In this document: in pieces, positions 28,017 to 62,216 of the stretch
Numbering within the stretch: the first letter of the stretch is position 1
Layout: each line of letters begins with the position of its first letter
Source: Oopsacas minuta
Lineage: Eukaryota > Animalia > Porifera
Assembly (NCBI GenBank): GCA_024704765.1
Contig: JAKMXF010000318.1
Span: 62,001-126,000, forward strand
Reading direction: 5' to 3'
DNA length: 64,000 nt
Program-made: the position numbers and the translations under genes
The notes under the pieces: generated by a model
The model's database searches: none
The model's input: the letters and a program-made list of their open reading frames with translations, nothing else
Told to the model about the DNA's origin: nothing

Positions 28017-28083
<67 letters not shown>

Positions 28084-31000: not shown

Positions 31001-34000
31001 AATAATTATTTAAGTGGATTTTGAGTGTATTTACCAACGAAATGTTGGCATAGGATGTATTGCTATATACTAATTTACTTGAGTATTTTTACAATTATTT
31101 CAAGCGTATATGCTATGTTTCAATCTATTCATTGTTAATATTAAGTCAAATTCTTATTTTGCTATGTAGGCTATTAATATTGTAAATTGTAACCAAGGAT
31201 ATAAGCAGTGTTTATTTCTGCAAGGTTGCAATAGCCATATCTGTTAAAATCTGCGATACGATACAATATATCTGAAAATACCCGATACGATAAATATCGG
31301 TAAGATATATTAAAATAGAAAAATATCGAAAATGTCTGAAAATATCAAAAATAGGGAAAATAGCTGGAAAATACGGGAAAAGATGGAAATCTCGATATCG
31401 ATATTTCCGATAAAATACCGGATTGTAAGATGTTTTGGATGTTTTTCATTTCCGATATGTCGGTATCAAACCTTGATTTTTGCATGCTTTTTGAGTGGAA
31501 CAAAGTACGTATTTTTCGTGTAAATTTACCGTGTTGTTGATTACAATGTTAGCATAAAATGGTAACTGCTTCGGATAAGGTTTCAAATTTCTTGCCTCTT
31601 GCACGCCCTGTTGCAATGGAAGTAGCACCTGTTGGTTATTGGTACATACAACATGTTCTGAACACAAACAACACAGTTTTATCTGAGAATCTTCCATCTA
31701 AAATCGATATCCCTGAAGATGGTGATCAAATTGAAAGTTCTGATATTTCAAAATTGTTGTTAGATTCGGCTGATCCAATTGACCTTGCTCTCCTTGACCC
31801 TACTGCATGGAAATCTCAGGACCATTATAAACTACTCGGCCTTGGCCAGAAAAGATATAAAGCAACCATGGATGAGATAAAAACGGCGTACAGGAATAAA
31901 GTTATCAAACATCACCCGGATAAAATGAACACCAAATCAGTGGTTCCTTCAAACGAAAATGAAGATGAACAAGCAAGCAAAGAACTGACTTTAGAAGAAA
32001 AATATTTTCAATGTATCGTTAAAGCACATGAAATTCTATCCAATCTATCAAAACGTAGAGCTTACGATAGTACTGATCCTTTCTTTGATGATTATATACC
32101 AGAACCTGATGACATCATTGATGAAGATTTCTTCTCTGTACTTAAACCTGTTTTTGAAAGGAATTCACACTTTTCTACTCTTCAGCCTGTGCCAGATATT
32201 GGAGACATAAATACACCTTACACAGAAGTGCAGGACTTTTATAGATTTTGGTTTGGATTCAATTCATGGCGTGAATTCTCCTATCTTGACGATGAAGAGT
32301 TCGATCCTGAAAAAGCAGAAAAACGAGAGGAGAAACGTTGGCTCGCGAAACAAAACAAACATGGAAGAGCTCAATTAAAGAAAAATGAAATACAGCGTAT
32401 TATTAAGCTAGTTGAGGTAGCCTTTGCTAATGATCCTCGTGTGCTAAAAGCTGAAGAAGAAGAGAAAAAGAGAAAAGATGACGAGAAGAGAATGAAACAA
32501 GAGAGACTCGCAAAAGAACATGAAGAGAGGGAAAGGAAGAAGAAAGAGAAAGAAGATATAGAATTGAGAGAAAGAGAAGAACGTGCAGAAATTGAAAGAT
32601 TGCAAGAAATTGAAGATAAGAAGCAACGCGAAGAGAGGAAACAAGCTTTTAAAAGACAGCGTAATGAATTTAAAACAGCTTGTAGTAAACAAAACAATTT
32701 CTCTACAACTCATATAAATAGTGCTTCTGCAGAAATAACGCAGAATATTATTGAAATCGAGAATTTATGTCAAGCTTTGACATTGGAAGAACTGACAGTT
32801 TGTACAAAGAGGATCAGTAGTGAACCTCAGTTTGAAGCTTCTAAAGCTATCTTTGAAGAATATGTTTGTAGTATGAGAGATAAGCAGGAAGAAGAGATGA
32901 AGAAATCTTTGACACAGACTGGTGGCGCACAAGGTATGTGCATTTTTGTAATTTTACAACTGAGTGTCGTTACTACAGTAAAACCTTCGTACATTTTCCA
33001 TCTTTTATTTTGTAATTTTGTTGTGGCGAGCAAACAAGAACAATTTGTTCGAAAATGATGTGAAATATGGTCAACGGATATATTGAAAAACCCGCTTATA
33101 TTGAAATCTGAAATTGTACAAATATGGCCCCAAACCGTCGAAGTAACAAATTTTCATCGGTTATATCAAACAGTAATTCTCGCAGTCCCTTGAGCTTCGA
33201 TATAACGGGAGTTGAATGTAATTGTAATTAATAGCTACTGCATATTATCTTTTAGGGAAGAAAAAGGATCAACTCAAACATGACGATTGGACCGCTGAAG
33301 AAACACAGCTGCTTGTGAAAGCTGTTACTCTCTACCCAGCTGGTACTCAAGCACGTTGGGATGTTATAGCAAACTACATCAATAAACACAGTACTAGCGA
33401 TATTAAGAAAACTGGTAAACAAGTAATAACTAGAGTCAAGTGTTTACAGAAAACTGATGGTAAAGAAGCAATTAAATCCGATGCACAGGCATTTTCGTTA
33501 TTCGAAAAATCACAGGGACATAAAGCACAGATTTCTTCCGAAAAAACTATTAACTATGAGGCAGCTGTGGTTAATATATCATGGACAAGTGCTGAACAGA
33601 AATTATTGGAAGAAGGTTTGCGTACTTTTCTAGCTACAGATGCAGAAAGGTGGGAGAAAATCGCGAAAAAAGTTGGCACCCGGGATGAGAAAGATTGCAA
33701 AAGAAGATTCAAAGAGATCGTAGCAAGTTTACAGGCTAAAAAGGCAGCAACTAAAAGCTAATTTCCTGTTTAGTAGTGAATCTCACAATATTAGTTTGTA
33801 GAAAGTTGTTGCTATTGATTGTTTGTAAAATCATACATTTATTTGTAAAACACACACACAGATACGTTTTTATCATTTGTAATCTTAGGGTGGCTTTGAA
33901 GTAAAACAGTTTATCTATCACGAGTTTGATGAAAACTTCCTTCCTGCGAATTCTAACAACTTTGTAAAGCTCATTACTCAAGTTATAGATCTCTATTCTG

Positions 34001-36086
34001 ATGAGAAGACTGATCCCATCCTAGTCCACTGCGGGTGAGTGTCTTAAAGTTGAATTTTTTATTTATAAATTCGATAAAGTAATGGGCGAATAACTGAGCT
34101 AGATATCGAATTTAATTTGGTATAAGATAGTAAATTTGATATTTTACCCTGTTGTATGCAAAAGGAGATCCAGACCAGTGTTGCTAGATGATGTGCGTAG
34201 AAAGTTCATACCATCTTCTTGCCAAAACTAAGATTTCATACCATATGCCAAAATCTATGAACTCCATCATCTGGCAAAACTACCCGGATTTTCACCGCCT
34301 ACCCAAATAATAAAGCGCTGAATAGGAATATATAATACGTGGAACAATAAATTTGCAATAAATATGTTGTTATACGTTTTGAGATAAACTGGAAGAAAGT
34401 TAGAGATAAATAGGATATCGTAGCTAGTCTAAACACAAAAATTCAGTTGTGGAAACCATGGATTAGCGCTGCCTATTTTGTTGCTCGAAAAACATAAAAT
34501 CAATCAGGAAGCAAGCGCCCATCACTACGGCTTTCACGCGTACATCCAAATCCATAGGGAATTTGATGCCAAAGTTATCAGCATCAGTGAAATATTCCCT
34601 AGCAAGGCCACTCCACTGCTTTGATACTTTTCCAACGCTGGTACCATCTACTGCCGTTACATCAAAATCAATATCAGAGCACCATCTACAACATAATGCG
34701 ATACAGTTACCAGTGATATTAAGTATTTCTCGCTCTTCAGCATCAAGTACAGTGAATTTAGGATTCCAGAAGGTACAGTCTTGTCTCACGTAGCCTACTA
34801 TTTGACCGGGAGGCGATTGAACTTCCATTTTCTGTAGACAGCAGAAACAACACCAGGCTGAGCATCTATACGGGCGTACAATATGAATGACTTCGTGCTG
34901 TGTATTGTCCATGATTGACATCTCAAATGGCCGGTTAGGTCCGCAATACTGTCTAGCACAGCAATTACTGTTCTCAGCTGCGAAATAGATCTGCTGACCG
35001 AGCGTGTTTTTTATGACGTAGCGATTTGCAGTCTCCCAACCTGTCATTAGTTCCCATAGTTCAACCTGTTGGTGTACTAGGATCTGATCTATCTGAGTCA
35101 GGTACTCCAGTCCAGGAGGGCAATTAGCCACTGCTTGCGGGGGAGGCATCCACTCTACTGTTTTAGTCTGTGGTGCACCTGGAGGAGCAGGGGGAACTTG
35201 ACCTTGTTGATACCCCTGGGGTGGCTGTGCGTACCCTTGAGGTGGTTGTGCGTACCCTTGAGGTGGCTGTGCGTACCCTTGGGGTGGTTGTGCGTAGCCC
35301 TGAGGAGGTGGGGCACCTTGTCCTGGAGGTATTGCTGACATTCTATTAGCTAGAAATTAAAGTATCCTATTTATATTTATAATATAATCAATAAATTTAT
35401 TAACATTTATACTTATTTAGTGATACCGTAGGATGTTCTGGAATGTTCTGTGCCTCGCTATACTCTATCGAGCGACTGCTTGCAGAAAATGAAGTAGATG
35501 TGTTCGGATGTGTGCGACAACTGAGGAAAGATAAGCCAGGCATTATACCTACTCTTGTAAGTATAAAAGAATATTATTTCACCAATCATGGTTGAATTCT
35601 AAGTAGCTGTATCAAGTTACAGATATTTTAAGTACCAAGAATTCTAGCAAGTGTTGTGTTGATGTGAAACACGTGTGTATGTTTATAAAATTGAGCTTCT
35701 CAGGTTAATTACAAGCCTAGAGCCCCCCTGATAATTATTTATGTATACGTATAATTAATTTATTCTCAAAAGGCTTCTTGCACGTGGTAATAATAAATGT
35801 AGTAGGAATTCAGTGTGACAAGGAAAGTTTAGAAAAAATAACGTCCTATACAGAAATACTTTATGGAATTGCAGAAATTTGGTAGCCTTTTTGATAAGTA
35901 GGGGTCACCCGCTCAGCACTGCTTGCAATTAATCGACATTGATACGCAGTTTATCTACACCCTAGTATTTTGAAAGGCGGTAAAAACAAAGCTTTTCCAA
36001 TCGATATTTTTTCATTCCTCTATTTTCTTTAGACACACTACAAGGGTATCTACAAGACGATTTTATCCTTCATCATTATTAATTGA
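11871..36086 (+). CDS. Receptor-type protein tyrosine (pseudo)phosphatase: signal peptide, 12 Ig-like, 2 FN3, membrane-proximal domain, TM, PTP D1, PTP D2
   Basis: Signal exon 11871-11931; Ig exons ~11992-17116; FN3 exons ~17345-18531; TM exon ~19595-19718 (IIYTIVAVGIVFILFLLSVLLIYCLIR). D1 exons include ~20593 (NRFVDIFP), ~20873 (DYINAS), ~21073 (YIATQ), ~22596 (DFWRQCWE), ~23579-23701, 26027-26190 (SWPD..LLVHC) and 29102-29237. D2 exons include ~30269 (YINATF), ~30392, ~30623-30762, 33889-34034 (ILVHCG), 35421-35556 and 36033-36086 (YKTILSF, stop). The junctions I checked keep frame. Confidence 0.88.
13814..13987 (+). CDS. 57-aa single-TM microprotein, COX14-like, nested in receptor PTP intron 13576-14200
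   Basis: ATG tct ctt...gaa TAG encodes MSLLTKLFAPQNGYKVGYVCFSIIMGYAIYGSYQTGQGISNAVERMRTKEGTALKQE. GYK, a hydrophobic helix, YG.Y and a charged tail resemble COX14 as I recall it. Below the ORF-track size cutoff. Confidence 0.55.
   Translation: MSLLTKLFAPQNGYKVGYVCFSIIMGYAIYGSYQTGQGISNAVERMRTKEGTALKQE
18600..18773 (-). mobile_element. MITE family B copy (TIR ~CAGTGTAACCTC..CAAACGG, TA TSD)
   Basis: ta|cagggcaactttcacaaacggg ... ggaggtttcactg|ta, inside a receptor PTP intron. Confidence 0.75.
20359..20514 (+). mobile_element. MITE family A copy (TIR CAGTCAACTCCCGTTATATCGAA)
   Basis: ta|cattcaactcctgttatat...ttgtacaaatatggtcccaaa...ttcgatgtaacgggagttgactg. Confidence 0.85.
22756..22923 (+). 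mobile_element. MITE family A copy
   Basis: ta|cagacaattcccgttgtattgaa...tttgatataacgagagttgactg|ta. Confidence 0.85.
24363..25691 (+). CDS. Coiled-coil plus BEN-domain-like protein, nested in receptor PTP intron 23702-26026
   Basis: Intact intronless 442-aa ORF with a low-complexity N-terminus and coiled coil (LDKRLRVMEGLMKQSIKLQKR). The C-terminal VVFSNHE..TLTTSG...PLDGSKLQGII....F....LKQAIDEKNRR fits the BEN-domain pattern (by eye). Confidence 0.7.
   Translation: MSTSIEKSQIFPEQKFNTVVTCSNSVDTSSLLPIVMSQPNAQPEPVCIVITDPNQPKQYSNSILSVPNVISYSNPIIPNLYYLGQDIPNIVPATPPGTESNISVVTPTKTEIPLVNNHGFFPIPLSQPQLAKKPLLSSSNIENHHSSTSSCETISEKTLSGNDQGYKILDKRLRVMEGLMKQSIKLQKRTLRHQERMEKIIQHCMKAKYEEQTVASGTNRMVHFQRYLNDAQPPPLFRYSSHPENIVVPVIESSSPSDSPTLYFEPQKEDSISPNLTIDMSLMEAAEHKSPHKYHSHSCSMYNKSIRDFNDVETIQWLDRILTILGLGVTVEKIQEVLSQTNTITHFTAEFQKVVFSNHERKTLTTSGKFRKRKLERIVLGPLDGSKLQGIIQLSLYLFGVAERDEDRVKYQLKQAIDEKNRREFYREDRGTKRVHLSSIPN
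26230..26710 (-). pseudogene. Decayed reading frame of unknown origin
   Basis: One frame reads protein-like with interspersed stops: KHLLARINVQLDNIFSQHVEGHICD*DELQQNTENICKQEFDNYTSNEVIRKDLFAG*IGTEFLYL*DQSRSLLQFTIEDTRFPVLISRV. Confidence 0.3.
27576..27758 (-). mobile_element. MITE family A copy (reverse orientation)
   Basis: ta|cagtcaactctcttatatcgaagctcaagggacc...tttgatataacggaagttgactg|ta. Confidence 0.88.
28017..28080. repeat. (AAT)n microsatellite, about 21 units
   Basis: Uninterrupted aat tract. Confidence 0.98.
28081..28855 (-). mobile_element. Possible 5'-truncated, decayed non-LTR retrotransposon ending in the (ATT)n tract
   Basis: Minus-strand stop-riddled frame (...IKFCKFDWTDFNLLTFH...IAECKLCERQEENGYF) resembles the Cys-rich ORF2 C-terminus of LINEs. 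It is followed by an (ATT)n tail. Confidence 0.3.
31221..31475. mobile_element. Putative TIR element with gatacga/gatatcga subterminal motifs
   Basis: caaggttgcaatagccatatctg ... ccgatatgtcggtatcaaaccttg form imperfect inverted ends with repeated gatacgata/gatatcgata motifs. No clean TSD. Confidence 0.45.
31559..33761 (+). CDS. DNAJC2: DnaJ subfamily C member 2 (MPP11/zuotin), nested in receptor PTP intron 30763-33888
   Basis: J domain (QDHYKLLGL...HHPDK), zuotin domain (FYRFWFGFNSWREFSYLD), charged coiled coil and two SANT domains. Exons 31559-32933 and 33256-33761 join in frame. Confidence 0.95.
33075..33218 (+). mobile_element. MITE family A copy (left TIR lost), in the DNAJC2 intron
   Basis: aaacccgcttatattgaaatctgaaattgtacaaatatggccccaaacc...ttcgatataacgggagttgaatg|ta. 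Confidence 0.8.
34176..34282. mobile_element. Small TIR element (CAGTGTTGCCAGATG-type ends)
   Basis: cagtgttgctagatgatg ... catcatctggcaaaacta inverted pair with an internal duplicated ttcataccat..gccaaaa. TSD not recognisable. Confidence 0.45.
34463..35341 (-). CDS. PLSCR: Phospholipid scramblase A, nested antisense in receptor PTP intron 34035-35420
   Basis: CPPGLEYLTQIDQILVHQQVEL, Cys-rich CSAWCCFCC, FTDADNFGIKFPMDLDVRVKAVVMGACFLIDFMFFE. N-terminal PPQGYAQ repeats (21 bp, ~5 copies). Intronless. Confidence 0.95.
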   Translation of the reverse strand: MSAIPPGQGAPPPQGYAQPPQGYAQPPQGYAQPPQGYAQPPQGYQQGQVPPAPPGAPQTKTVEWMPPPQAVANCPPGLEYLTQIDQILVHQQVELWELMTGWETANRYVIKNTLGQQIYFAAENSNCCARQYCGPNRPFEMSIMDNTQHEVIHIVRPYRCSAWCCFCCLQKMEVQSPPGQIVGYVRQDCTFWNPKFTVLDAEEREILNITGNCIALCCRWCSDIDFDVTAVDGTSVGKVSKQWSGLAREYFTDADNFGIKFPMDLDVRVKAVVMGACFLIDFMFFEQQNRQR

Positions 36087-37189: not shown

Positions 37190-38257
37190 TCAGTGTCTTC
37201 TATGACCACCATGATGACCATGATGAGGTCTATGATGACCATGATGACCACCCTGATGAAGAGCAAGAGCAGCACCATGATGATGGCGACGACGATTATT
37301 CTGCTGCTGTCTGCGTTCAAAGAATATAAAATCAATCAAGAAGCATGCACCCAACACAACCGCTTTCATTCGTACATCTAAATCCATTGGGAAGGTAATA
37401 CCGAAGTTATCAGCTGTTGTGAATAATTCCTTGGCTAGCCCACTAAACTGTTTTGTCACATTTCCTACATTTAATCCATCCATAGTCGAAACTTCAAATA
37501 CAATATCACCATATGGCTTACAACACAGGGATGCCATACTACCAGTAATAGTGAGTATTTCCCGATCCTCTGCATCTAGTATGAAGAATTTGGGATCCCA
37601 ACATGTACAATTTTGAGTTATGTAGCCTACCACTGTACCAGGAGGGGATTGAACCTCCATTCTCTGTTTGAACCAACAACAGAAACAGGGCCCTGAACAA
37701 CTGAATTCACGTGTCATGTGGATAACTTCATTATGCGCATTGTCCAGGATTGATAGCGTGAAAGGACGATTTATTCCGCAGCATTGTCTGCAAAATGGAG
37801 TACTGTCTTCAGCTGCAAAGTATATCTGTTGTCCTAAAGTATTTTTCACGATGTAACGATTCGCAGTTTGATATGCTGTTACTACCTCCCACAGTTCTAC
37901 CTGTTGGTGTACCAGAATCTGATCTATCTGTGTTAAGTACTCTAGTCCGGGAGGACAGTTAGCTAACCCTGTGGGAGGAGGCATCCATTGGATTGGCTGC
38001 GGCTGTGGAGCATCAACAGTTTGTGGCTGGGAACCAGGTGGCACTGGGAATGGAGCGATTCCTTGTGATTGGACGTAAGGAGCCTGTAGCTGTGGCTGGG
38101 AACCAGGTGGCGCTGGGAATGGAGCGATTCCTTGTGGTTGGACGTAAGGATCTTGCGGATGTGGTTGTGGTTGTTGCTGCACAACAATTTGTGTTACAGG
38201 TCCTTGTTGTTGAACCTCTTGACTTACTGGTACTTCAGGATTCTGTTCATCCGACAT
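37190..38257 (-). CDS. PLSCR: Phospholipid scramblase B with His/Arg/Gly-rich C-terminal tail
   Basis: Same scramblase core, a duplicated YVQ.QGIAPFP.PPGSQPQ N-terminal motif, and tail NNRRRHHHGAALALHQGGHHGHHRPHHGHHGGHRRH. Confidence 0.95.
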   Translation of the reverse strand: MSDEQNPEVPVSQEVQQQGPVTQIVVQQQPQPHPQDPYVQPQGIAPFPAPPGSQPQLQAPYVQSQGIAPFPVPPGSQPQTVDAPQPQPIQWMPPPTGLANCPPGLEYLTQIDQILVHQQVELWEVVTAYQTANRYIVKNTLGQQIYFAAEDSTPFCRQCCGINRPFTLSILDNAHNEVIHMTREFSCSGPCFCCWFKQRMEVQSPPGTVVGYITQNCTCWDPKFFILDAEDREILTITGSMASLCCKPYGDIVFEVSTMDGLNVGNVTKQFSGLAKELFTTADNFGITFPMDLDVRMKAVVLGACFLIDFIFFERRQQQNNRRRHHHGAALALHQGGHHGHHRPHHGHHGGHRRH

Positions 38258-38801: not shown

Positions 38802-39866
38802 TTATCTACGTCGTCTCGCTCTTGGTTGATTTTCGAAGAATATATAATCTATCAGGAAGCATGCACCAATCATGACGGCTTTCATTCGTACGTCCAAATC
38901 CATTGGGAAGGAAATACCAAAATTATCAGCTGATGTGAATAATTCCTTTGCGAGGCCACTCCATTGTTTTATCACACTTCCAACAACCGTGCCATCTAGA
39001 CTTGCCACTTCAAACTTTATTTCAGGAGCATATTGCAAACAACATAGAGCTAACATGCTCCCGCTTATAGTGAGTATTTCCTGTTCCTCCGCGTTCATAC
39101 AGGTGAATCGAGGGTTCCAGAAACTACAATCTTGGCGTACGTAGCCTATGACTTGCCCTGGAGGTGATTGAACCTCTAATCTCTGTTTTATCCAAAAACA
39201 GTAACAGTGAGTGGAACATGCGAATTCTCGGACCATATGTATAACTTCTTTCTGTGAATTGTCTAAGATTGACAACTCAAATGGACGATTTATTCCACAA
39301 TATTGTCTGCAGCATAGATTGCTTTCTTCAGCTGCAAAGTATATCTGTTGCCCTAATGTATTTTTCACGATGTAACGATTCGCAGTTTGATATGCTGTTA
39401 CTACCTCCCACAGTTCAACCTGTTGGTGTACCAGAATCTGATCTATCAGAGTTAAGTACTCGAGTCCAGGAGGACAGCTAGCTATCGCTTCGGGTGGAGG
39501 CATCCATTGGATTGGCTGCTGTTGTTGTGGAGCACCAACAGGTTGTTGTTGGGAACCAGGTGGCGCTGGGAATGGAGCGATGCCTTGTGATTGGACGTAC
39601 CCTTGAGGTGCCGGTCCTGGAACACCTTGTGGATTTTCAGGCCCGAGTGGAGGAGATTGTGCATATACTTCAGATTGTCCATATCCTTGTGGTATTACAT
39701 GCACTTGTGCTGGTAGTTGTTGTGCTTGAGGGATTCCTTCTTTTACGTCATCTACAAACGGTTGCTTCGGTTCATCATCTTGATGGACTTCAGGCTGTGC
39801 AGACGTCTGTTCAGGAACTTTATTTCCTTCTTCAGATTCTGTGATACTACTTAGCCCTTCTGACAT
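38802..39866 (-). CDS. PLSCR: Phospholipid scramblase C
   Basis: Scramblase core, acidic/Pro-Gln N-terminus, ends ENQPRARRRR. Confidence 0.95.
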   Translation of the reverse strand: MSEGLSSITESEEGNKVPEQTSAQPEVHQDDEPKQPFVDDVKEGIPQAQQLPAQVHVIPQGYGQSEVYAQSPPLGPENPQGVPGPAPQGYVQSQGIAPFPAPPGSQQQPVGAPQQQQPIQWMPPPEAIASCPPGLEYLTLIDQILVHQQVELWEVVTAYQTANRYIVKNTLGQQIYFAAEESNLCCRQYCGINRPFELSILDNSQKEVIHMVREFACSTHCYCFWIKQRLEVQSPPGQVIGYVRQDCSFWNPRFTCMNAEEQEILTISGSMLALCCLQYAPEIKFEVASLDGTVVGSVIKQWSGLAKELFTSADNFGISFPMDLDVRMKAVMIGACFLIDYIFFENQPRARRRR

Positions 39867-41222: not shown

Positions 41223-44200
41223 ATGTCAGGTTCTCCAGCTGCTAGACAAGCTACACCTCCTCCAGGAAATACAGATGCTCCTAATAATGAGCTCTATGTT
41301 CCTTCTGAGTTATATAAACAGGTTTGTGTTGTATCTTACTTCTTACAATATTTATATATCGGTAATCTGTATGGGATATCTGTGAAATACGATTTGGTCT
41401 ACAGATACTACAAAATCTCTGGTCTCTTAACTCTAAATCGTAAATCCCGCGATTGAATAGTGAGATTATTCACGATCTCACGATTTGAGAGTTCCCAGTT
41501 TTGAGATGTAATTTTGATACTTTGCTTGCACAGGAAATTCCCCGGAAATTTCCATTAATTGTTCTCAATCAAATTTAAGTGGGGACGAATACTCCCTTGT
41601 CCCAGTTCCTCATCCTTCACCGTCCTAATGATAATAGACTGATTCAGCTTATTCATCGCATTATTATTTGTTTTTAGGTAAATCGATTTCTGGAACGTTT
41701 CTTCGATCCTTCCCCTGTTCCTATAGAGAGTAAGGTGGATCTCTCTCGCTTGATGAGTGCTATTCCCTTCGAGACAATCCTAAACATTTTATACATATAT
41801 TTCTGTCCCGAAGGAGAAACACACCCTGATACTCCTAACCCCTCACTAAGGGCAGGAGGCACACAATTAGGGGCTGTAGTTAGTACTCTTGTACCTTATG
41901 TGAGTGTAGCTTATGATATAGAACAGTTAGATCATGTTGTGGGTCGTGTTTCTAAGGAATGTTCTGAGTGGATAAGAGAGATGATATGTCTACCTGATTT
42001 CACTGGGACACTATTTCATTCTGATACGTGAGTAGTTTTATGTCCAGCTATTTATTGATGATTATTTTGGTTCAAACCCAGTGTAACCTTCACAAACGGA
42101 GAGACCGTTCCTCCGTTGTTGGAGGTTCATCTGTATTTTACTAGGAATTCGCTCTCTATATTTTTCTCTCCGATTCCAGGAGTTCCCCGTTTCTACAGGT
42201 CACATTTGTAGAAGTTTTACTGTATTGAGTATTCACGTCCATGGTCCATCTTTCATTCTCACATATTTCATAAATTATACTATCTATCTCAATAATTTAG
42301 CTATTATCTATTACAAATACAATGTTGGTAACATTCAGTGAAGAAGTGAAAGAGAAACTTCCTCAACTACTATCAACACTAGACCCAGAGCTCCTACTAC
42401 CTGTGTTTAGACTAATTGTGAATAACTTTATGGGAAGACAAAGTTTCCATGAATATACCGCGTTTATGAAACAAAATACAGCATTTTCTGGTGAGAATAG
42501 TAAATTCTTAATGAAGGCTATGCAAGAGGTTTTCTATCAATCTTCAAAGGTTAATTTATCTGAGCAAGATTTCCTTGATTCCTTACAGTTAATTGATATT
42601 ACTGACGCTGGTAAAGATCTATACACTGTGTATCGTGAGAATTGCATGCAGTTACGTGACTCGCTTAAACAAGGCATAGCAATGACGTCATATTATGATT
42701 TAAAATGGCGAGTTGAAGTACAAGTAGCCAGGAAGGTTCTACTACAAGAGGCTGTACCTAAAATTACTCTATGTCTCACGCTAGGTAAGAAAGGGAGGGT
42801 CAAAAATCCAGAAGATTACGGTATAGCTAGACGCGGAGATTTCACTGACCTACAAGACCATATCTTACAAATGGACCCTAAAACTCTTATCAGGGTAACA
42901 CGTATACTGGAGGAAGCTCTCAGTGAGGCTACATCTCCATATTGTAGAAGAATTAAGAAGCTTCTCAAATAAAATATAGTATATCTATGACTGAATAATC
43001 TTGTAATGTATACTGTGTTGAATACATCTATGTTGTGTAATATTCAATGCTATATTCGTGTATATTATAAGAGAATTGTTATGTGATATATTTAGAAGTT
43101 ACCGAAATAGTTGCTATATACGCACAATTTGATTAAACCTCTCAATATATTTATTTATTATGATGTGATCCTATAGGAGATGTATAGGAGGGTTGGGTAA
43201 AATAGCACAACTAGCATTACACCAAAGGTACCCAGCTTTATATGAAGAAGGTCCAGCAACACTTGTTTCTAACCCTCCCGTCATATATATCAGTCCAGCT
43301 GCTCCTGAACATCTGGAATTGCAACTAGCTATATCTCTATCAATAGGACGTAATTCTATTGTGAGATTACCACCTGTTACTATTGGATGTCCTATTATTG
43401 ATGTAGATAAGTTTGAAGAGATTATAGCCAAACATAATAGAGAAGGTATTCTCATTATTTATTGAATTATTCTTTGTGTAAACGAATATTTTATCTCCAA
43501 TTTGGTTACCTTTCAAACTACAATAAACTCGCAGATATTTCGACATAACGGGAGCTTACTGTATTTAAGATATTTTTGGGATATATTTACTTATTATTAC
43601 TTCTACTTAATTCTAACAAACAAACACAAACAAACTAACAGAAATAGAAAAATTATTTTTTCCTATAAAAAATAATATCTAATTATGTTCATTTAATTTG
43701 TTTGACATTTCTGTTATCGCTTTGGTTGCTAAGTAAATTACTTTATTATCATAAGATATATTTTGACCTTCCTCATCACATAATCTATCTTGTAGCTGCT
43801 TCATGCCTTGGTCTAATTGGCTACATTTGTGTCTCTTGAGTCTCTTCACCCATGGTCCATTTTTCTCCTCTTGCTTTTCAATCTTTCTTTTTATTTGTCC
43901 AGTTTCAATACATTCCTCTTTAATTTCCATTTATTTCTTAACAAAGAATAAAAATTGATATAATTCACACGCCTATTATTATATTACGTATTATGATATA
44001 ATTTATGCGGGATGATTGGACTTGATTTAGTTTCTAAATCTAAGGAATTTTATTTGAAGCATTTCTGTTTATATGTACATACTGTTCCTCAAATCAGATG
44101 TATTCTTGTAAGGTCGCTATTCATGAGTACTGATATTCGTTTCGAGTGGATTTACTTTATCATAAAATGTATACAGGTAGACGCCCCTTACTCCTGCTGG

Positions 44201-47200
44201 CATACCTGGGTACACCAGATACAGGACATACAGATAATTTCAGTCGCTTAAGCTGTGTATGTTCCCTAGAGAATATTTGGCTCCATCTAGCCGGTATATC
44301 TCTATCTAATCTCGTACTTTCACACAGACAGAATTTATCATCTCTTACAAGTATTGTAACACAGGGTAACTCGCTTACTCTTGATATTGGGCTATGGTTT
44401 GGCTTGCCTACTCTACCTAATGTAACTTTGTACAAAGAGAATGATGCTGTAATCAGTAACAGAGACATAATGCATAAGCTGATTGGACTTAAGAATAAGC
44501 AGGAGTATCTACTTCCCATCGTTGTATGGACTACTATCCTCTCTATAGGTAAACACATCGCTATACCAACTTAAATATTTCCTAGATTTAAAAGGCAGGG
44601 GTAATGAAACGCATAAACTAACGAACAATTTTATTCCCACGCGAAATGCAGATATATTGTATAAGTTTACAGATAGGCGGATACGTCATTATGAATTGAT
44701 ATTACGAAGGTTGTATATATTATCAAATATATTGAATTATATTAATTGTATGTATCTGGATGTTAGGTAGAAAAGGCCTGATCAGTACAGTAGACTATGC
44801 TATGGGTATAGCTACCGCTATAATACAAGGACTATGTGATATACATTCTATCAAACTGATATCTCCGGAACATGCTAGCTTTATGATAAGGTTCGGTTAT
44901 AAAGGCCCTCCCTTCTTATTGAAGAGAGGTAATGATACTACTCAGGGAGCTACAGAAGAGCCTACACAGTATCTACCTGTAGAGGTAAGGCTTTTAAGGG
45001 ATATAATCACTACGTGTAGGAGTTGAAATGTTTTTTGAAAATTTTTCAAAAATTGTGTTTTACAACCATCGTCTAAAGTTTCACAGAGAGCCGAAAACTG
45101 CCATTTACACTGTGCAACCGAATTATAATACACATGCATAAACTTAATAGTTATACGATTCTCAATACAAGTACACTATCATAAGTAATTCGCAATAATC
45201 TTCACTACACATAGAACACACATCAATTCTGCTGTATATTCTGCCTATAGTATGTCCTCACTGCATTCATTTGTTCAGCACACATTCTTATATGACTCCT
45301 CCTCTCCCTAATCCTCATTACAGCTTCATCTGGTGTTATCCCATGCTTATCCATTAAGTAGCAGGCTACTACTGTTGTACTACGCCCTCTACCTGCTTTA
45401 CAATGTACATACACACTTTTACCACTTAAACCTATCTCATTTATGAAATCTATTCCTAATTGGATGTTTTCTTGAGTCGGTGCACGGAAGAAATCTACTG
45501 TAGGGAGATGGCGTTGGATTATGTTTCTAGCTCTCCACTCATCAGCTGTTGGCATTGTGTGTTTTATCTCAAAACTTTCATTCATTGTAAGCACTCCACC
45601 TATATTTTCATTATAAATGTCTGGTAAGAATGTTCGTAGAGGAAGAGCACCAAGAACTACCTGATTGTCTACCCTGTCGAACCAGCGACGTGTTTCACAT
45701 CTGTTCAAGTAGTTGAATAGGAGAGATGGATAGAAGAATACACGCGAGTATATCCTAGCGAAAAGTTCTAGGAAGAATCCTGGCATTGTAATAATAATAA
45801 TAATAATATAATTCTAATTGGATTAAATAATATGAATAAATTTGTGAGTTACAATGGCCTCTGTATATTTGGGATATTTTCACTAAAGATATAAGCTCAT
45901 ACAATTTTGAATTTATTTTTAGATAACAAATGACTTTTTCGATGTAATAAGTGAATCTTTGCTACCAGACTTTCCTACTTTAAATCTGATAGAGGGTCCT
46001 GAAACGAATGAGCTTCGATACTTCACGATAGATGTGTATCACTGTTTCACTCAGTTAGGAGCTGGCTTGGAAGAAGTGGATAAGTTTATTAAGAAACTGA
46101 AGTTAATTACTGAGGAACTTGATGCTACTCTCTATACACGAGTGAAGATTAGTAAGCATTTTCATAAAGACATTAATTTGTCTGTAAAAGAAGTTAAAGG
46201 TAAGATATTCACAAATACATCAGTCAATTCTGGTGATATCGAAGCTCAAGAGATCGTGATAATTACTTAGATGACCGATGGAATATACAGTCAACTACCC
46301 GTTTTTATATCCAATTATGAACTTGTACAAATATGTTCTCAATATAAATTTCATCATATTGAACTCTGCTTATATTGAAGATTCGAAATAATTATCGCGG
46401 TCTCTAGAACTTGGATGTAACGGGAGTTGACTGTATTGTACTTCTCCATATTTCAAAAATAATTCTGACAAGCACCTGTGATAAATATGCCGTACTATGA
46501 ATAGAATGTCACTATCGTTACAAATTGTAATATATATCAATTTATCTAAAACAGGTCGTACATCAACAGCTTGTATCCACTATATGCCTACTAAACTAGT
46601 GAACTCTCCTGCCCTGAGACCTGAGCAGATAACAGAGCTCAATAAGGCTAATCGTAAACTAGCAACACATATGAGTGGAAAGCATCATGCGTATGGATAC
46701 TGTGTAATACAGGATTATGTGTATGTTGAGCTTGGTAGGATAAAACCAGGAGAACAACAGGATGTGCTGGAAACTTTCAATGAAATAAAAGAACAAGCAA
46801 ATCAGTGAGTATACATAGTTATGTCTACAAGAAATTGTATTAAATGGAGTTCAATTAATTTGAAGCATCTATATAGTATGTATTCTGATTTATGAACAAT
46901 GGAGAAAAATCTTCTAAAATTAATACTTTGTTCTACAAAAACTTCTCAAAATCTTACTATTATAATTCCCTACAGATTGGATGTAGATTCAGATCAGCTT
47001 GAGGTTCTCTCAGAGCAGGTAGCTGCAGTACTCTCTAACGCACAAGCAGAATTAGTAGAAGAACAAGATAGAGCCTTCTGGGATGAAGGATTAATACGTA
47101 AAGTCCCTTTAATCGGCTCTGTAGTTAACTGGTGGTCTCCTTACAATCCACAACCTACAGGACGTAGTTTTAACTTTATTTCCGGTAAGATGGAACCTAC

Positions 47201-47351
47201 TGCAGAAGTGTACAAGAACAAAGCACAACTTACTACTGATGAAACAGGATTATCTCTTGCAGACTCATCACTCATATCTGCTTCTAGTCTTAGCATTGCA
47301 TCAAAAACTGGGTCTGTTGAATCGCCGTTGAAAGAGAAACCTGAACCTTGA
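41223..47351 (+). CDS. PDXDC1: Pyridoxal-dependent decarboxylase domain-containing protein 1
   Basis: Eight exons join in frame: 41223-41321, 41678-42027, 43177-43445, 44177-44548, 44767-44984, 45923-46199, 46555-46804, 46976-47351. Motifs LALHQRYP...PVIYIS, GTPDTGHTD...IWLHLAG, SLTLDIGLWFGLP and EGLIRKVPLIGSVVNWWSP...GRSFNF. Confidence 0.88.
42079..42222 (+). mobile_element. MITE family B copy
   Basis: cagtgtaaccttcacaaacgg...ccccgttt...gaagttttactg|ta, ~100 bp upstream of COMMD2. Confidence 0.7.
42322..42972 (+). CDS. COMMD2: COMM domain-containing protein 2, nested same-strand in PDXDC1 intron 42028-43176
   Basis: MLVTFSEEVKEKL..., COMM signature YYDLKWRVEVQVARKVLLQEAVP and LQMDPKTL.....LEEAL.E...PYCRRI. 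Intronless. Confidence 0.9.
   Translation: MLVTFSEEVKEKLPQLLSTLDPELLLPVFRLIVNNFMGRQSFHEYTAFMKQNTAFSGENSKFLMKAMQEVFYQSSKVNLSEQDFLDSLQLIDITDAGKDLYTVYRENCMQLRDSLKQGIAMTSYYDLKWRVEVQVARKVLLQEAVPKITLCLTLGKKGRVKNPEDYGIARRGDFTDLQDHILQMDPKTLIRVTRILEEALSEATSPYCRRIKKLLK
43679..43930 (-). CDS. 83-aa bHLH-like microprotein, nested antisense in PDXDC1 intron 43446-44176
   Basis: KRLKRHKCSQLDQGMKQLQDRL...NISYDNKVIYLATKAITEM follows bHLH spacing (basic region, helix 1, loop, K.IL..A...I..L-like helix 2). ATG start, with an acceptor-like ttaag 6 nt upstream. Confidence 0.45.
   Translation of the reverse strand: MEIKEECIETGQIKRKIEKQEEKNGPWVKRLKRHKCSQLDQGMKQLQDRLCDEEGQNISYDNKVIYLATKAITEMSNKLNEHN
45223..45786 (-). 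CDS. PTPMT1: Mitochondrial phosphatidylglycerophosphatase, nested antisense in PDXDC1 intron 44985-45922
   Basis: FARIYSRVFFYPSLLFN, LGALP, MNESFE, PTVDF and intact VYVHCKAGRGRS. Intronless. Confidence 0.95.
   Translation of the reverse strand: MPGFFLELFARIYSRVFFYPSLLFNYLNRCETRRWFDRVDNQVVLGALPLRTFLPDIYNENIGGVLTMNESFEIKHTMPTADEWRARNIIQRHLPTVDFFRAPTQENIQLGIDFINEIGLSGKSVYVHCKAGRGRSTTVVACYLMDKHGITPDEAVMRIRERRSHIRMCAEQMNAVRTYYRQNIQQN
46288..46433 (+). mobile_element. MITE family A copy
   Basis: ta|cagtcaactacccgtt...ttggatgtaacgggagttgactg|ta, in PDXDC1 intron 6. Confidence 0.85.
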
Positions 47352-48749: not shown

Positions 48750-49499
48750 TTAAAGATCTTGTTTGTTTTCTTCAGGCAGTTGACTTAAGTATGATATTTC
48801 GCGAGCTATATTAGCGCGTGCAGTCTTCTCATGACTTATTTTGAACCAGTCAGTGTTATAAATCCATTGATATTCTAGAAACCCTTTTAAAACTTCACTT
48901 CTACGCTGTGTGTATATTACAAGTGGTATATGTTGATATTCAGTTCTTATCTGTTCAGAATATTTCACGTAGTCTCTCTCCTTTGTGCCAAGTATTGCCA
49001 TGTCGAAGTCAAGGAATAATAACAGATCAGAATCTGTAGCGAGAGAGGGTGATACGCTGTGTGTCTTTGTTTCTAGAATGTATTGAGATACAAGCGTGTT
49101 ATTAACCGCAAGTTTTCCTCTATTATAATTGCCCCGTGTTATATCTTGGTAGAATCGTTCAAATTCTACTGCGCTTAATTCCTCGTTATCAACCGCACGT
49201 GGGTTATAAATTATATCATGAAATATAATAGCTAGAAATACAGTATCAGGATCATCCAATTTATCTCTGAATAGTAGAAATAAATTGAGCATTTCTTCTA
49301 TGTGTTTGAGTGTATGATAATGTCTTTGAGGTTCTCTGTAGTGAGTTTTAATGAGTTCTAACCACTGATTAGAAAGGTTATCATCTATGCTGTATTTGTG
49401 AATGAATTCTTTCCATATGATATCCAGCTGATTAGATTCGTTCCAGCCAAATACTTTGTACCCAATTAATATGATGAGAAAACTGATAGCTAGTAACAT
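48750..49499 (-). CDS. Predicted HD-superfamily metal-dependent phosphohydrolase (COG4339-like) with N-terminal membrane anchor
   Basis: HYREPQRHYHTLKHI, AIIFHDIIY, DNEELSA, ILETKTH, FLDFDMAILG, IRTEY and ARANI. Hydrophobic N-terminus MLLAISFLIILIGY. Confidence 0.85.
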   Translation of the reverse strand: MLLAISFLIILIGYKVFGWNESNQLDIIWKEFIHKYSIDDNLSNQWLELIKTHYREPQRHYHTLKHIEEMLNLFLLFRDKLDDPDTVFLAIIFHDIIYNPRAVDNEELSAVEFERFYQDITRGNYNRGKLAVNNTLVSQYILETKTHSVSPSLATDSDLLLFLDFDMAILGTKERDYVKYSEQIRTEYQHIPLVIYTQRRSEVLKGFLEYQWIYNTDWFKISHEKTARANIAREISYLSQLPEENKQDL

Positions 49500-56601: not shown

Positions 56602-59600
56602 ATGTACAACGAAATGCTACAACGAAGTGGCGCGAATTGTTTCAAATGTATGCATAAATGGAAGCTTAACTTCACTTCAGGGTTAACCTTTATCAGTGTG
56701 GTATCGTTGGTTAACAAATTCACAAATACATACGGTTATAAACAAGGGGAAGAGTTCTCTAGTAAGCAGGGAGGTAAAAATACAGTCAGTACTACTACCT
56801 TAGATGCTCAACTACAGAGTGATCCAGTGATATTCCATTTCATCGCTTCTAAACTAAAAGTATGTTCTTTGAGAATTTAGATATAGTCAGCTACCGTTAT
56901 ATCGAAGCTGAAGGGACCGCAATAATTACTTAGATATAACCGATGAAAATTTGTGATACTTCGGCTGTTTGAAACCATATTTGTACAATTTCAGACTTCG
57001 ACATAAGCGGTTTTTCGGTAAATCCGTTTTAGATATAAAGGGAATTGACTGAACGCACGTTTATGATTATTTTAATTCATATATAAATATATGGAATTAT
57101 GCGACAAATAAGGATTAGCCGACATATAAGGAATTTTTCTAACTTTGTATAAATTGCCTCGAATTTCTCCATATATGCATAATAATTCGTGTTAATCAAA
57201 ATCGTGGTAATCCTGAAGGGGAAAACGTATATTTCTAACATACAAAGGTATGAAAATAATGTTGCACTTATTTTAATTTTTATGATAGATTTTGTTCCGA
57301 CAACTTTGAATGATTCACATTTTATCATAGTTTAGCGATTTGTACGTCTAATATGCCCCAAAATGACAAGTTTTACGTATTATACTTAATTAATTAAAAC
57401 TGTACACGGCTTAAGCCTTTTTGGAGATTTTTGAGTCCGAAAAGGGCTGAAGTTTGGTTGAATTTCGGGTTTAGAAAGGTCATTTTCTGATTGGGACACA
57501 GTAACTCAGTCCTACCATCTACGGATAATATGTATTATATTTGTGCGAATTAAACAACGTAGCTATTTATCATAGCTGAACCAAGCGATCAATCCCGATG
57601 AATATTTTGCAGCTATAGCTTCACCAAATAATCCTCGATTTGAATTCATGTCCTCTAACTGGATACAATGAAATCGAACATCCAACTGAAATGATTCCAT
57701 TCTGCTCAACTTTTTTTACGTGTATTATATGACAAGAGAATTCAATGGGCATCACGATGGACCTGGCAACACCTCACGTTGGGTGCTCATTCCACACAAA
57801 GTTCAGAATCCATTCACTCAACGATCAAACAGTTTTTTAATGTACATACTCTTCTTACACATCTCGCGAATAAAATTGATGAAAATAGGAAGACCCTTTC
57901 CCTTTCAGGACAAAATGAAGGACGTGCAACCCGGTTAGCGCTTAAAATGGCTACATACTCATCTAAACATCCGATAGAACGAAACCTTAAGTTAACACCA
58001 TTTGCACTGGCGATTGTAAAGGCACAAATTGATCAGTGCATCCAATATAGTGTTGATGCCATATTTAACTTTGGCGAAGAAAAGATTTATGAAATTGACT
58101 CTCTATTGTCAGAGACTCAGGTAAGGAAGAAGTTGTAATAATCTAGTACACTGGAACCTCTCTTATCCGGTTAGTGCCGGACCGTAGGGTGCCCGGAAGT
58201 CAGAATTTGCCCGAATCTGAGAAATAACATTAACTCTATGGGAGAGCCAATCAGTTGGAATCGGGTCCACTTTTCAGAACCGGATCCGAGAAACCCGGCC
58301 CCGATTCCAACTCTGGATCTAATTATAATCAATAGGATAAATATCGATATGGACGGATATAGCTGTTATGACGTATTTTAGTTACAAAGAAACGTGTTAG
58401 ATATGACGTACGAGTAAAACAGCTCTACTATAAGGAAAATTTACTGAAAATGGAAATGGTCGAATCAATTTCAATCCTTTTTGAAAAATGGTGCTCGGTT
58501 GAGGGAGGTGCCCGGATATCGGAGTCCAGATAAGAGGTTCGAGTGTACGTATAATAATTTATGCTAATTCTAATACGTATTTTATCTTTATTCTAGTTGA
58601 AGGAGAAGGATTTTCGGGAGGTACCAACAAGGAGAAATTAACATCTATGGACCTTGGGTTATCGAAGGTTTTTGCTAAGTCTAGCCGTAAGACAACGTTG
58701 ACATCTTGCACATTCTTATTCCCATCATCATGGGGTTCACTATGTCGTCACATGCTTATTGTTTATCATCACGAGAAAATAACGAATATGCACGACAAAG
58801 CTATAGTGGATTTCTGGAAGGTAAGCAGCCATTCGATACAGCACAGATATTTTTGCAACCGCACTCGGTTATATCAGAATTACGTAATGACTCGCCAAAT
58901 TATTAACGTTTTGTCCTTGTGTTCTCTCAACTATTAATATATCGTCTCATAATAGATAGAGAATCAAGCAGATCACAATTCTAATATCTACAGCTGTATT
59001 GCTAGTCACAATGTAATAGAATTACAAGAAAATGATTATCAAAATAATCCTATCCTAACGAAAGATGAAAGGTATAACATGCTAACAACAGAATTTAAAA
59101 ACATTGCTCATCTTGCATCACTTGACCATTCAACTTTTTCGCTTATGAGCAATTGCTAAGACCTATACCATAGGAAAGTGGAGCAATTATTCCTAGTGTC
59201 GCAACAATCCTCAATCCTAGACGTGTTCGATCCAAAGGGCGCCCTTCTAATAAAAGGAAACGGAGCTTTAACGCTGTTAGGACGAAGAAAAGGATTACAG
59301 ATAAAAACAAATGAAAATTTGGTACTTTGTCACAGTGTAATAGTTGTCATTAGAGATATGCACATATATGTAGATAATTTCTCTAGTGTAGCAATATAAC
59401 ATTCCTTATAATAATCATTAATGTTCCTTATAAACCCTTATATCGTCCTTATCCTTATATGTCGGCCATAATTCTTTATTTGCCGGCTAGCCGACAATGT
59501 AGACCGCCGACATATAAGTAATCCCATATATGTTTACATCCTTTAGAAAGATGAATATTCGTATAAACTTGCTTCGAGTGCAATTGGCTCTTTAGGAGAA

Positions 59601-62216
59601 AAACAACAAGGATCTGGGCTACGGATAAGTGGATATGATTCTAATACTTTAGGTAGTAACGTACCAAATGAAGATAGGAATGTGGAAGGAATGTTAATGA
59701 ATGGTGCTGCATTACTTTTCGCGGTTTTTGATGGTCATAAAGGCCAGCTTTGTTCAGAAGCGTTGAAACAACAACTTTTAAATACAGCTGCTGAACAAAT
59801 TGGTGAGTGATGTCATATTAATTCGATTTTTAATTATAACAACTTGGTAGAGTAGACAAAATATAATTTGATATTTTTGAACATTTTTTTGCTTCAATAG
59901 TAACATTCCAAAAAGTTCAAGAGTTCATCTGCCTGTATCATTAAAACGGGCAACTTTGATATATAATATTACTTAGAATTTATTTGCTATTTTATTTTAG
60001 AAATACTTTATGTCATCAAAATATCAATAAATTCCAGATTGATTCTAGCATTTATCATCTTACGCGGCCTATAATGATGGTTAAATGCTAAATATGGCAA
60101 TACTGTACAATCTTAGATATGTATGCTGTATCTTAGAATTCTCATATATAGTTTCTGAATCATTACTTTACAGATAATTAGTTATGACTCTGTTACGATT
60201 ATTGAATGGAATTTACCTTGAAAACTAACAAATATGACTTTGTGTTACTTTGTGTAATTGCATTTTTATGATTGCATTTTTATGATTGCATTTTTATGAT
60301 GTCATATTTAATCAATTGTTAAGTAGTTGTATACACATTTCAGACTGAATATCCTCTCTACAAGCTTGTATATGGATTTATCGCATTTTTGAATCCATAT
60401 TTTTTTCAATACAATTTTCTTGCTTCTATTACCTTATATGGGTGTGTAGCTGATAAATAAAGCCTGTTGTAATACATATTTGTTTGTTGCTAGGTCCGAT
60501 CTTATCAACTCGTTGTCCTCTCCTCGCTAACACTTCCATAAGCCCTGTTACACTAGATCAACATCCCGGTACACATTCATGTCCGGTAACCTGTCCTATT
60601 GGATTCCCCACTACATGTGATATTGAGGCTGGGTTGTCACCTTCTGCTGGAGATGAGATAGCTATGGGTCTGCAAGAAACATTTGTGAGTATGGATCAAC
60701 GATTGGAACAAAGAGCTAGACAGTCTGCACAGAAATATCAAAGAACTAAGGTATTCTATATGTCTTGATACAATATTATTTACTCAATTCTATATCTGTG
60801 TAATGATTCCCAATTTTCATACTTTCCGCGAAATTCTAGTTACTTACAATCCAAAACTAAATTATTGATTGATTAAGATCTCACATCTGTTGCAAAACTT
60901 AGAATTAATTAATATTTATATAGACTCTTACTAAAGAAGACTTGGAACATTTAAAAAGATTCTATCAAGGTTCATGTGCACTCACTACCTGTGTAGTATC
61001 AAATCAACTTTATCTAGCTAATACCGGAGACTGTAGAGCTGTACTTGGATCAAAGATTAACGGAAAATGGGTAACGACAGGGCTAACAGCTGATCAAACA
61101 GCTGGCAACGCTGATGAAATGATACGTTTGTTCAAAGCTCATCCAGGAGAGCGTGTTATACGGCATGGCAGACTATTGGGTGGTCTTATGCCTCTGAGAA
61201 GCTTCGGTGACGCAGGTAAGTATATAGATAAATATTTGCATTCTATTCAAGAAATGGAAATATATTGCCTCCACCTAATTGAAACCTACCACTAGTTAAT
61301 TACATTATTGTTACGTAAAATAGGTAGTAATTCTGTTTCGAATTAAGTTCATACTGAAACTATGCTTGTACATCTAATGCAAATATTTTTGTAGAATACA
61401 AATGGCCTTCTGAATTCTTGAAGGATATCGTATCACTTTCTCCCAATTACCATACACCACCATACTTGACTGCAGAACCTGTATTGACTCACCATACACT
61501 GGAAAATCATGATAAATTCTTGATCCTAGCTACAGATGGGTTATGGGAGAAGCTAACTAGTGAACAGGCTGTGCAGTTAATTGGGAAAGCTATTGATGGA
61601 CAGAAACAAGAGTTGAGAAGGGAATCATGGTTTTCAGGTAATCATATTTATACGTATTATACTGTCTTGCTATAGGTTTTCTGTGTGGAAATAATACTCG
61701 ATCTATACTTGGTAACACACAAGTTTTCCAAGGAATTCAACCATTATGGATCCCTTTGTATTATGTTCAGATTATATTGATATTTTCAAATACAGTCAAC
61801 TCCCGTAGTATCGAACATGGATATCGAAATTCCTGCTTACATCTAAGTATGAATTTGTATAAATATGGTCCCAAACCGTCAAGCTCAAGGTAACATCAAA
61901 AACGATCCTTCAGCTTCGATATAACTGGAGTTGGCTGTATTTCTGTAATTGGTAGTAAATATCTTTGAAACTGTTTAATATATATTTTGTATACTTAGGC
62001 CTCTTCTTCAAAACACGAAAACCAGATGACGCAATAGAATCATGTCCTAACTCATATACAACATTAGACACCAATCTAGCTACATACCTTATAAGGCAAG
62101 CATTAGGGGGTGATGCTAAAAGCCTATATAATATCCTCAATTTAAGCCCTGGAGTATCTCGAGGCTACAGAGACGATATTTCTGTTACAGTACTGTATTT
62201 TAATGAAGAAAAATAA
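56602..62216 (+). CDS. PDP: Mitochondrial pyruvate dehydrogenase phosphatase catalytic subunit (PP2C/PPM)
   Basis: Exons 56602-56859, 59547-59802, 60494-60750, 60924-61215, 61395-61637, 61999-62216. The exon 1-2 junction gives IASKLK|KDEYSYK (cf. SILKANEYSFK). Motifs YDSNTL..N.PNEDR, FAVFDGH, ANTGDCRAVLG, GRLLGGLMPLRSFGD, PPYLTAEP, LATDGLW and RDDISV. Exon 1 is less certain. Confidence 0.88.
56884..57051 (-). mobile_element. MITE family A copy (reverse orientation)
   Basis: ta|tagtcagctaccgttatatcgaagctgaagggacc...agatataaagggaattgactg. Confidence 0.82.
57560..59310 (+). pseudogene. Decayed MULE/FAR1-type transposase with SWIM finger, in PDP intron 1
   Basis: LYDKRIQWASRWTWQHLTLGAHSTQSSESIHSTIK (FAR1/MULE-like), SWIM-like TSCTFLFPSSWGSLCRHMLIVY and C-terminal ILNPRRVRSKGRPSNKRKRS. 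Frameshifts and stops are present. Confidence 0.75.
58149..58545. mobile_element. MITE family C (TIR ~CA(G)TGGAACCTCTCTTATCCGG, TA TSD) inside the MULE remnant
   Basis: ta|cactggaacctctcttatccgg ... ccagataagaggttcgagtg|ta, with an internal inverted repeat gttggaatcggg...cccgattccaac. Confidence 0.8.
60257..60300. repeat. 14-bp tandem repeat (attgcatttttatg) x3
   Basis: Three exact copies in a PDP intron. Confidence 0.9.
61793..61937 (+). mobile_element. MITE family A copy
   Basis: ta|cagtcaactcccgtagtatcgaa...ttcgatataactggagttggctg|ta, in a PDP intron. Confidence 0.88.

Follow-up and report, generated by a model that had tools for sequence, protein, structure and literature searches.

We analysed a 64,000-nucleotide stretch of the genome of the glass sponge Oopsacas minuta (assembly GCA_024704765.1, contig JAKMXF010000318.1, positions 62,001 to 126,000 of the forward strand; hereafter the window) and find that a PDXDC1-family gene in it is host to other genes. 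Eight exons on the + strand, spread over 6.1 kb (41223-47351), form one spliced gene, and each of its three long introns contains an intact, conserved open reading frame (ORF). We assign the ORF in intron 2, on the host strand, to COMMD2 and the one in intron 5, antisense to the host, to PTPMT1; intron 3 holds a small antisense ORF, here called ORF83. Very probably the locus is an old and ordinary case of gene nesting, in a glass-sponge genome that is compact. What is new is that the public annotation of O. minuta lacks both COMMD2 and ORF83.

The PDXDC1 host gene

The eight exons sum to 2211 nt, which equals 736 codons and a stop. Every intron is of the GT-AG type, and the reading phases agree over all junctions to give a single 736-codon frame. 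Introns 1 to 7 measure 356, 1149, 731, 218, 938, 355 and 171 nt. Only introns 2, 3 and 5 exceed 700 nt, and an ORF lies in each of them. The public annotation of the assembly includes a 736-residue gene with identical ends to our host, without a recorded Pfam match. A sequence-only reading of this DNA had proposed that the eight exons join into PDXDC1 and that every intron over 700 bp contains a gene, and both proposals held up.

Contigs from four public runs of one sample (X1 to X4) cover the window. Runs X1 to X3 cover it evenly and were read as DNA. Run X4 was treated as RNA-like, as its contigs show spliced joints and the intron stretches 41400-41599 and 45000-45199 are without contig. Because the contigs are strand-blind, we report positions and not expression levels. 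The X4 contigs show GT..AG joints at introns 1, 4, 6 and 7. Ten loose letters equal to 42014-42023 are attached to three X4 contigs at the acceptor of exon 3; the triplet ATA is common to 42024-42026 and 43173-43175, and the ends fit the junction 42027/43177. Likewise, nineteen loose letters equal to 44964-44982 are found on two X4 contigs that start at 45921, by the acceptor of exon 6, and fit the junction 44984/45923. By joints or loose ends, X4 shows the splicing of six of the seven host introns, and the two junctions just named are those that the earlier reading had offered for RNA confirmation across introns 2 and 5.

The third junction offered, 43445/44177 across intron 3, came out in part: it is based on the reading frame, the public model, and GT and AG at the orthologous sites in four relatives. 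For such comparisons, eight loci (L002 to L009) were fetched around relatives of COMMD2; L008 and L009 are near-identical and gave identical matches, leaving seven distinct relatives. When exon ends were projected onto L002 to L005, GT and AG were found at all seven intron positions.

We searched for the identity of the host exon by exon. An exhaustive HMMER search of 1.84 billion representatives with exon 4 (123 aa) returned 113 matches, the best of which were proteins of 750-860 aa named PDXDC1 or PDXDC2. The named matches came from fish, molluscs, corals, a crinoid and the calcareous sponge Sycon, and PDXDC1-like central Pfam domains were present in five of the six matches scanned. An alignment of exon 4 (A4) has 20 invariant columns. 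Conversely, when six PDXDC1/2 proteins were compared with the window by tblastn, they matched only the host locus, and did so colinearly: exon 3 to residues ~150-240, exon 4 to ~240-360 and exon 8 to the C-terminal block (residues ~600-770 in five of the six proteins; E 7e-11 to 1.5e-15). Among single host exons, exon 4 alone gave a Pfam match, and a weak one, to Pyridoxal_deC (E 0.013); its weak matches also included structures of group II decarboxylases.

The site of the lysine that binds pyridoxal phosphate (PLP) in group II decarboxylases (HKW in 4obu) reads GLW in the glass-sponge PDXDC1 (exon 4, within 44179-44547), placing a Leu there. This suggests that the host protein may be non-catalytic or altered, like several other members of its family. 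The PDXDC1 proteins of one coral and one snail keep Lys at this site (SKW).

Could the exon groups that flank the guests be separate genes, falsely joined, with no nesting at all? Exons 1, 2 and 5-7 are recognisable within the sponge clade only, as PDXDC1 proteins from outside the sponges gave no match to them, and the X4 rows listed include no joint for intron 3. Yet the loose ends span guest-bearing introns, joining exon 2 with exon 3 and exon 5 with exon 6, the phases are compatible at every junction, exons 3, 4 and 8 are colinear with PDXDC1, and the splice sites are kept in four relatives. We regard a false join as almost certainly wrong.

Several further points weigh against a spliced host carrying independently expressed guests. 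The RNA evidence consists of strand-blind contigs of one sample, from a run that is not recorded as RNA, and the X4 rows listed hold no joint at 43445/44177. One X4 contig spans 43419-44184, that is, all of host intron 3, while stretches of other introns are without contig; it might derive from an intron retained in the host transcript instead of from the mRNA of ORF83. Neither a promoter nor a transcript end was observed for any guest. The central domains PF22930 and PF22937 gave no match on exons 5, 6 and 7 searched singly at E up to 0.1, although exon boundaries may split these domains. On the evidence as a whole, the eight exons are very probably one spliced PDXDC1-family gene.

Genes and a transposon within the introns

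The ORF in intron 2 matched the Pfam COMM domain PF07258 above the cut-off (E 6e-5) and PF21672 (HN) below it. Human COMMD2 was its best solved structure, aligned over the full length at E 1.6e-16, and COMMD5 came next at 0.011. Seven orthologues, each on a long contig of an ENA or Logan assembly, share 56-73% identity with it. These matches identify the ORF as COMMD2, the same name and strand that the sequence-only reading had given. X4 contigs overlie the gene. The exact protein was not found in a public collection of 15 billion sequences, and the NCBI annotation of the assembly has no gene called at this position.

One of the X4 contigs on COMMD2 has its start at 42299, where an AG (42299-42300) precedes the ATG by 21 nt, and the genomic sequence upstream is carried by a separate contig. 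A start at 42299 would fit a candidate acceptor for a trans-spliced leader, although the leader itself was not seen in the contigs. Such a leader has been described in glass sponges (Francis et al. 2023, PMC10282587) and could mark the 5′ end of COMMD2.

The ORF in intron 5 matched the Pfam family DSPc (E 1e-20). Mouse PTPMT1 was its best solved structure (E 7e-34), with the next family at 5e-15, and the active-site CX5R loop, HCKAGRGRS, aligned with that of the mouse enzyme. Named PTPMT1 orthologues from many animals share 36-48% identity. The ORF is, as judged from these matches, PTPMT1, and it lies antisense as had been claimed. It is annotated in GCA_024704765.1 inside the 736-residue gene, and an X4 contig spans 45232-45778 over it. 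A trinucleotide microsatellite of the ATA/TAA type at 45789-45808 closely precedes the start of PTPMT1, and the same one is found at 28017-28081.

ORF83 in intron 3 had been described as a basic helix-loop-helix (bHLH)-like ORF. The gene stood, and the label did not. All relatives have the ORF at the same place and on the same strand, with 78-87 codons when counted from the Met that they have in common (in L003 the longest ORF has 100 codons), 42-53% identity and tblastn E values of 1e-12 to 3e-21. In two pairs dS is not saturated, and there the ratio of nonsynonymous to synonymous substitution rates (dN/dS) was 0.17 and 0.25, so that ORF83 is a real coding gene under purifying selection. A profile search found it only in the same set of sponge assemblies. 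It is absent from the public annotation and, by exact look-up, from the 15-billion-sequence collection. The X4 contig over intron 3 ends at 44184, a position that differs from the one expected of a simple splice branch.

The identity of ORF83 was pursued by sequence and by structure. Searches of Pfam, of PDB by sequence and profile, and of the Atlas, including a feature search, assigned it to no family. The AlphaFold model has three helices and is of low confidence (predicted local distance difference test score, pLDDT, 65; predicted template modelling score, pTM, 0.27). With this model, Foldseek found no match in PDB, and the wide VIA search and the Atlas gave generic helical hairpins only, with Z below 5.

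A divergent bHLH transcription factor would account for the invariant basic stretch (KRK, WVKRxKR) and for what is predicted after it, a long helix and a second one with a loop between them. However, five orthologues failed to match PF00010 at E up to 10, the PDB profile search gave no bHLH chain at E up to 10, and the structure searches returned nothing beyond the hairpins, from a model that is itself of low confidence. We therefore consider a bHLH protein very unlikely. A CENP-W or histone fold was also considered and found unsupported. The cytochrome bc1 hinge protein is likewise unsupported: its matches were weak, at E 0.13-1, and ORF83 has cysteines that vary among the orthologues.

It is possible, and we say so tentatively, that ORF83 represents a glass-sponge-restricted family, either arisen de novo in PDXDC1 intron 3 or diverged past recognition, and kept antisense to its host through the history of the clade. 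If so, interleaved regulatory sequence, and not chance, would be what keeps the nest together.

Intron 6 contains a miniature inverted-repeat transposable element (MITE), as the sequence-only reading had noted. The element is short and non-coding. Its 5′ end reads TACAGTCAAYTCYCGTTATATCRAAG, and the reverse complement of this sequence stands at its 3′ end (alignment A2), giving terminal inverted repeats (TIRs) of ~26 nt. At least four further copies or ends lie within the window (27574-27762, ~56883-57060, ~22750-22927, 20495-20515 and 61789-61806). Extra X1-X3 contigs match the element at 46236-46268 and 46409-46436 only, which points to many copies in the genome. Some copies of this family hold a second, internal TIR-like stretch. 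Intron 6 of the closest relative is only 75 nt long, and the insertion in O. minuta is therefore recent. A search of Rfam found no RNA family anywhere in the window.

Age and origin of the nest

Comparing the eight loci, we find the flanking gene TAF12, the eight host exons, COMMD2, ORF83 and PTPMT1 in the same order and orientation throughout, and a flanking PID gene follows the host in every one. The introns of the closest relative measure 61, 993, 522, 53, 750, 75 and 50 nt, and only the guest-bearing ones are long. Most pairs are saturated at synonymous sites. In the unsaturated pairs, the host exon, COMMD2 and PTPMT1 gave dN/dS values of 0.02-0.12; with the values for ORF83, these ratios indicate purifying selection on all guests. 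As the layout is kept in eight loci despite this general saturation, the nest is old and predates the divergence of all eight genomes compared.

How did the guests come to lie in the introns? The mRNAs of COMMD2 and PTPMT1 might have been reverse-transcribed into existing PDXDC1 introns in a glass-sponge ancestor, the parent genes being replaced. Both genes are intronless, and no second COMMD2 or PTPMT1 protein was found among the annotated O. minuta proteins, which also answers the question, raised earlier, of other copies. In the homoscleromorph sponge Oscarella, PTPMT1 is not inside a PDXDC1 gene, and an intron is probable there, since the 661-nt range of the gene does not translate directly into the 181 aa of the protein. 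Given this, the intronless, nested state of PTPMT1 appears to be derived. However, the marks by which a retrocopy is recognised (a poly(A) remnant, direct repeats and an intron-bearing parent elsewhere) were not found at the locus: no poly(A) tract follows the stop of COMMD2 or PTPMT1, and no direct repeat flanks them. ORF83 has no known parent gene.

Two considerations limit what these observations can say. In O. minuta, single-exon transcripts make up about 60% of the total (9,872 are listed, for 16,340 genes; PMC10282587), so intronless guests are the norm and no signal of retroposition. The earlier suggestion that intronless guests fit retrocopy relocation or intron loss is thus right about their structure and uninformative as evidence of origin. 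Moreover, the nest predates the divergence of all the genomes compared, and the hallmarks of insertion would be gone. This age, beyond the point of synonymous saturation, weakens the test and makes the mechanism unrecoverable from the DNA. We consider retrocopying rather unlikely. The other fate that had been envisaged for the guests, that they are untranscribed duplicates of genes located elsewhere, does not agree with the data, as they are transcribed, with X4 contigs over each, under selection and syntenic.

Near the nest, the same reading had placed a first, unrelated host gene. A tyrosine-phosphatase C-terminal exon beyond DNAJC2 and a scramblase agrees with that claim, and the upstream phosphatase exons were not located (Table 1). 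Three scramblase paralogues stand in tandem on the - strand (34463-35341, 37190-38257 and 38802-39866), and their number and arrangement vary among the loci of the relatives. On the other side, a 249-residue ORF (48750-49499, - strand) without a recorded Pfam match is kept between the PID gene and Cmc1 in those relatives whose loci reach that far.

Table 1. Features of the nested locus and its neighbourhood (positions in the window)
Feature	Position	Strand	Evidence or remark
Host exon 1	41223-41321	+	ATG at 41223; X4 joint skips 356 nt, GT..AG, to 41678; 54-61% identity, all eight relatives' loci
Host exon 2	41678-42027	+	79-86% amino-acid identity in relatives over the full exon; its last letters are the loose ends on X4 contigs starting at the exon 3 acceptor
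COMMD2 (assigned), single exon, 216 aa	42322-42972	+	Intact ORF inside host intron 2, same strand as host
Host exon 3	43177-43445	+	tblastn match to PDXDC1/2 residues ~150-240, E down to 2e-9; 64-75% identity in relatives
ORF83, 83 codons, predicted small helical protein	43679-43930	-	Intact ORF inside host intron 3, antisense
Host exon 4, PLP-decarboxylase-like core	44177-44548	+	Best matches PDXDC1/PDXDC2
Host exon 5	44767-44984	+	X4 joint 44548 to 44767, GT..AG; 68-75% identity in relatives
PTPMT1 (assigned), single exon, 187 aa	45223-45786	-	Intact ORF inside host intron 5, antisense
Host exon 6	45923-46199	+	X4 loose ends at acceptor; donor 46199/46200 from X4 joint
MITE-like element, ~220 bp	46216-46437 (ends approximate)	none	Host intron 6; terminal inverted repeats
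Host exon 7	46555-46804	+	X4 joints on both sides; 67-84% identity in relatives
Host exon 8 with stop codon	46976-47351	+	C-terminal block match; X4 joint 46804 to 46976
DNAJC2/zuotin	31559-33058 and Myb exon 33315-33761	+	Neighbouring region
Scramblase	34463-35341	-	Between DNAJC2 and phosphatase exon
Tyrosine-phosphatase C-terminal exon	35443-35595	+	Beyond DNAJC2 and scramblase

Significance and comparison with known systems

A nested arrangement requires that the host exons are joined in one mRNA and that a complete, functional guest lies within an intron. For the first, we find loose ends over introns 2 and 5, and conserved sites with a continuous frame over intron 3. For the second, we find intact ORFs, low dN/dS (0.03-0.25 across the orthologues) and X4 contigs over each guest. 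The locus would thus work as one PDXDC1-family gene transcribed over its whole length and spliced from its eight exons, with an independent single-exon gene carried by each long intron: COMMD2 on the same strand, ORF83 and PTPMT1 antisense. Each guest presumably uses a promoter and a 3′ end of its own that lie no more than a few hundred bases away, and the host polymerase would have to pass through the 3′ end of the same-strand COMMD2.

Nesting of this kind is typical of glass-sponge genomes, which are compact and have many conserved nested genes. In Aphrocallistes vastus, ~2,432 genes (12.4%) are nested (PMC10282587). The sequence-only reading had taken a second host as a sign that nesting is a general organising principle; nesting is indeed widespread in the O. 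minuta genome, but the idea has already been published, and the locus points to no new mechanism. The locus is a clean example of how introns in the clade would by default be ~50-80 nt long, and longer only with a gene or a transposon inside, as with the recent MITE in O. minuta intron 6.

The main value of the locus is in annotation. A core subunit of the Commander complex and a conserved small protein were overlooked in the public gene set because they lie inside introns. This fits the published warning that the low count of 83 annotated nested genes in O. minuta is an artefact of the annotation method (PMC10282587). Claims of missing metazoan genes, or of gene loss, in O. minuta should be checked against intronic ORFs.

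We finally compared the components with their known counterparts. The sponge host resembles animal PDXDC1 and PDXDC2 in length (736 aa against ~750-860 aa), in the colinear core and C-terminal block, and in the family-invariant residues of exon 4. It differs from them in exons 1, 2 and 5-7, which are too diverged to match outside the sponge clade. Unlike true decarboxylases, it lacks the PLP-binding lysine, as do several other PDXDC1 proteins. The sponge COMMD2 aligns with the human Commander complex subunit (8F2R chain B) at residues 1-214 against 1-197, through the HN and COMM domains, and is 17 residues longer than the solved human chain of 199 residues. PTPMT1 keeps the HCKAGRxRS loop of the mouse mitochondrial phosphatidylglycerophosphate phosphatase (3RGO), with its N-terminal 34 residues falling outside the solved construct; unlike the mouse gene, it is intronless and lies antisense inside another gene. 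As for the glass-sponge nested genes already reported (PMC10282587), the present set of host and guests is not described among them, and the public annotation of O. minuta includes just one of the three guests, PTPMT1. The locus shares with them single-exon genes that lie on either strand in the introns of a multi-exon host, within a compact genome, and that are conserved between glass sponges.

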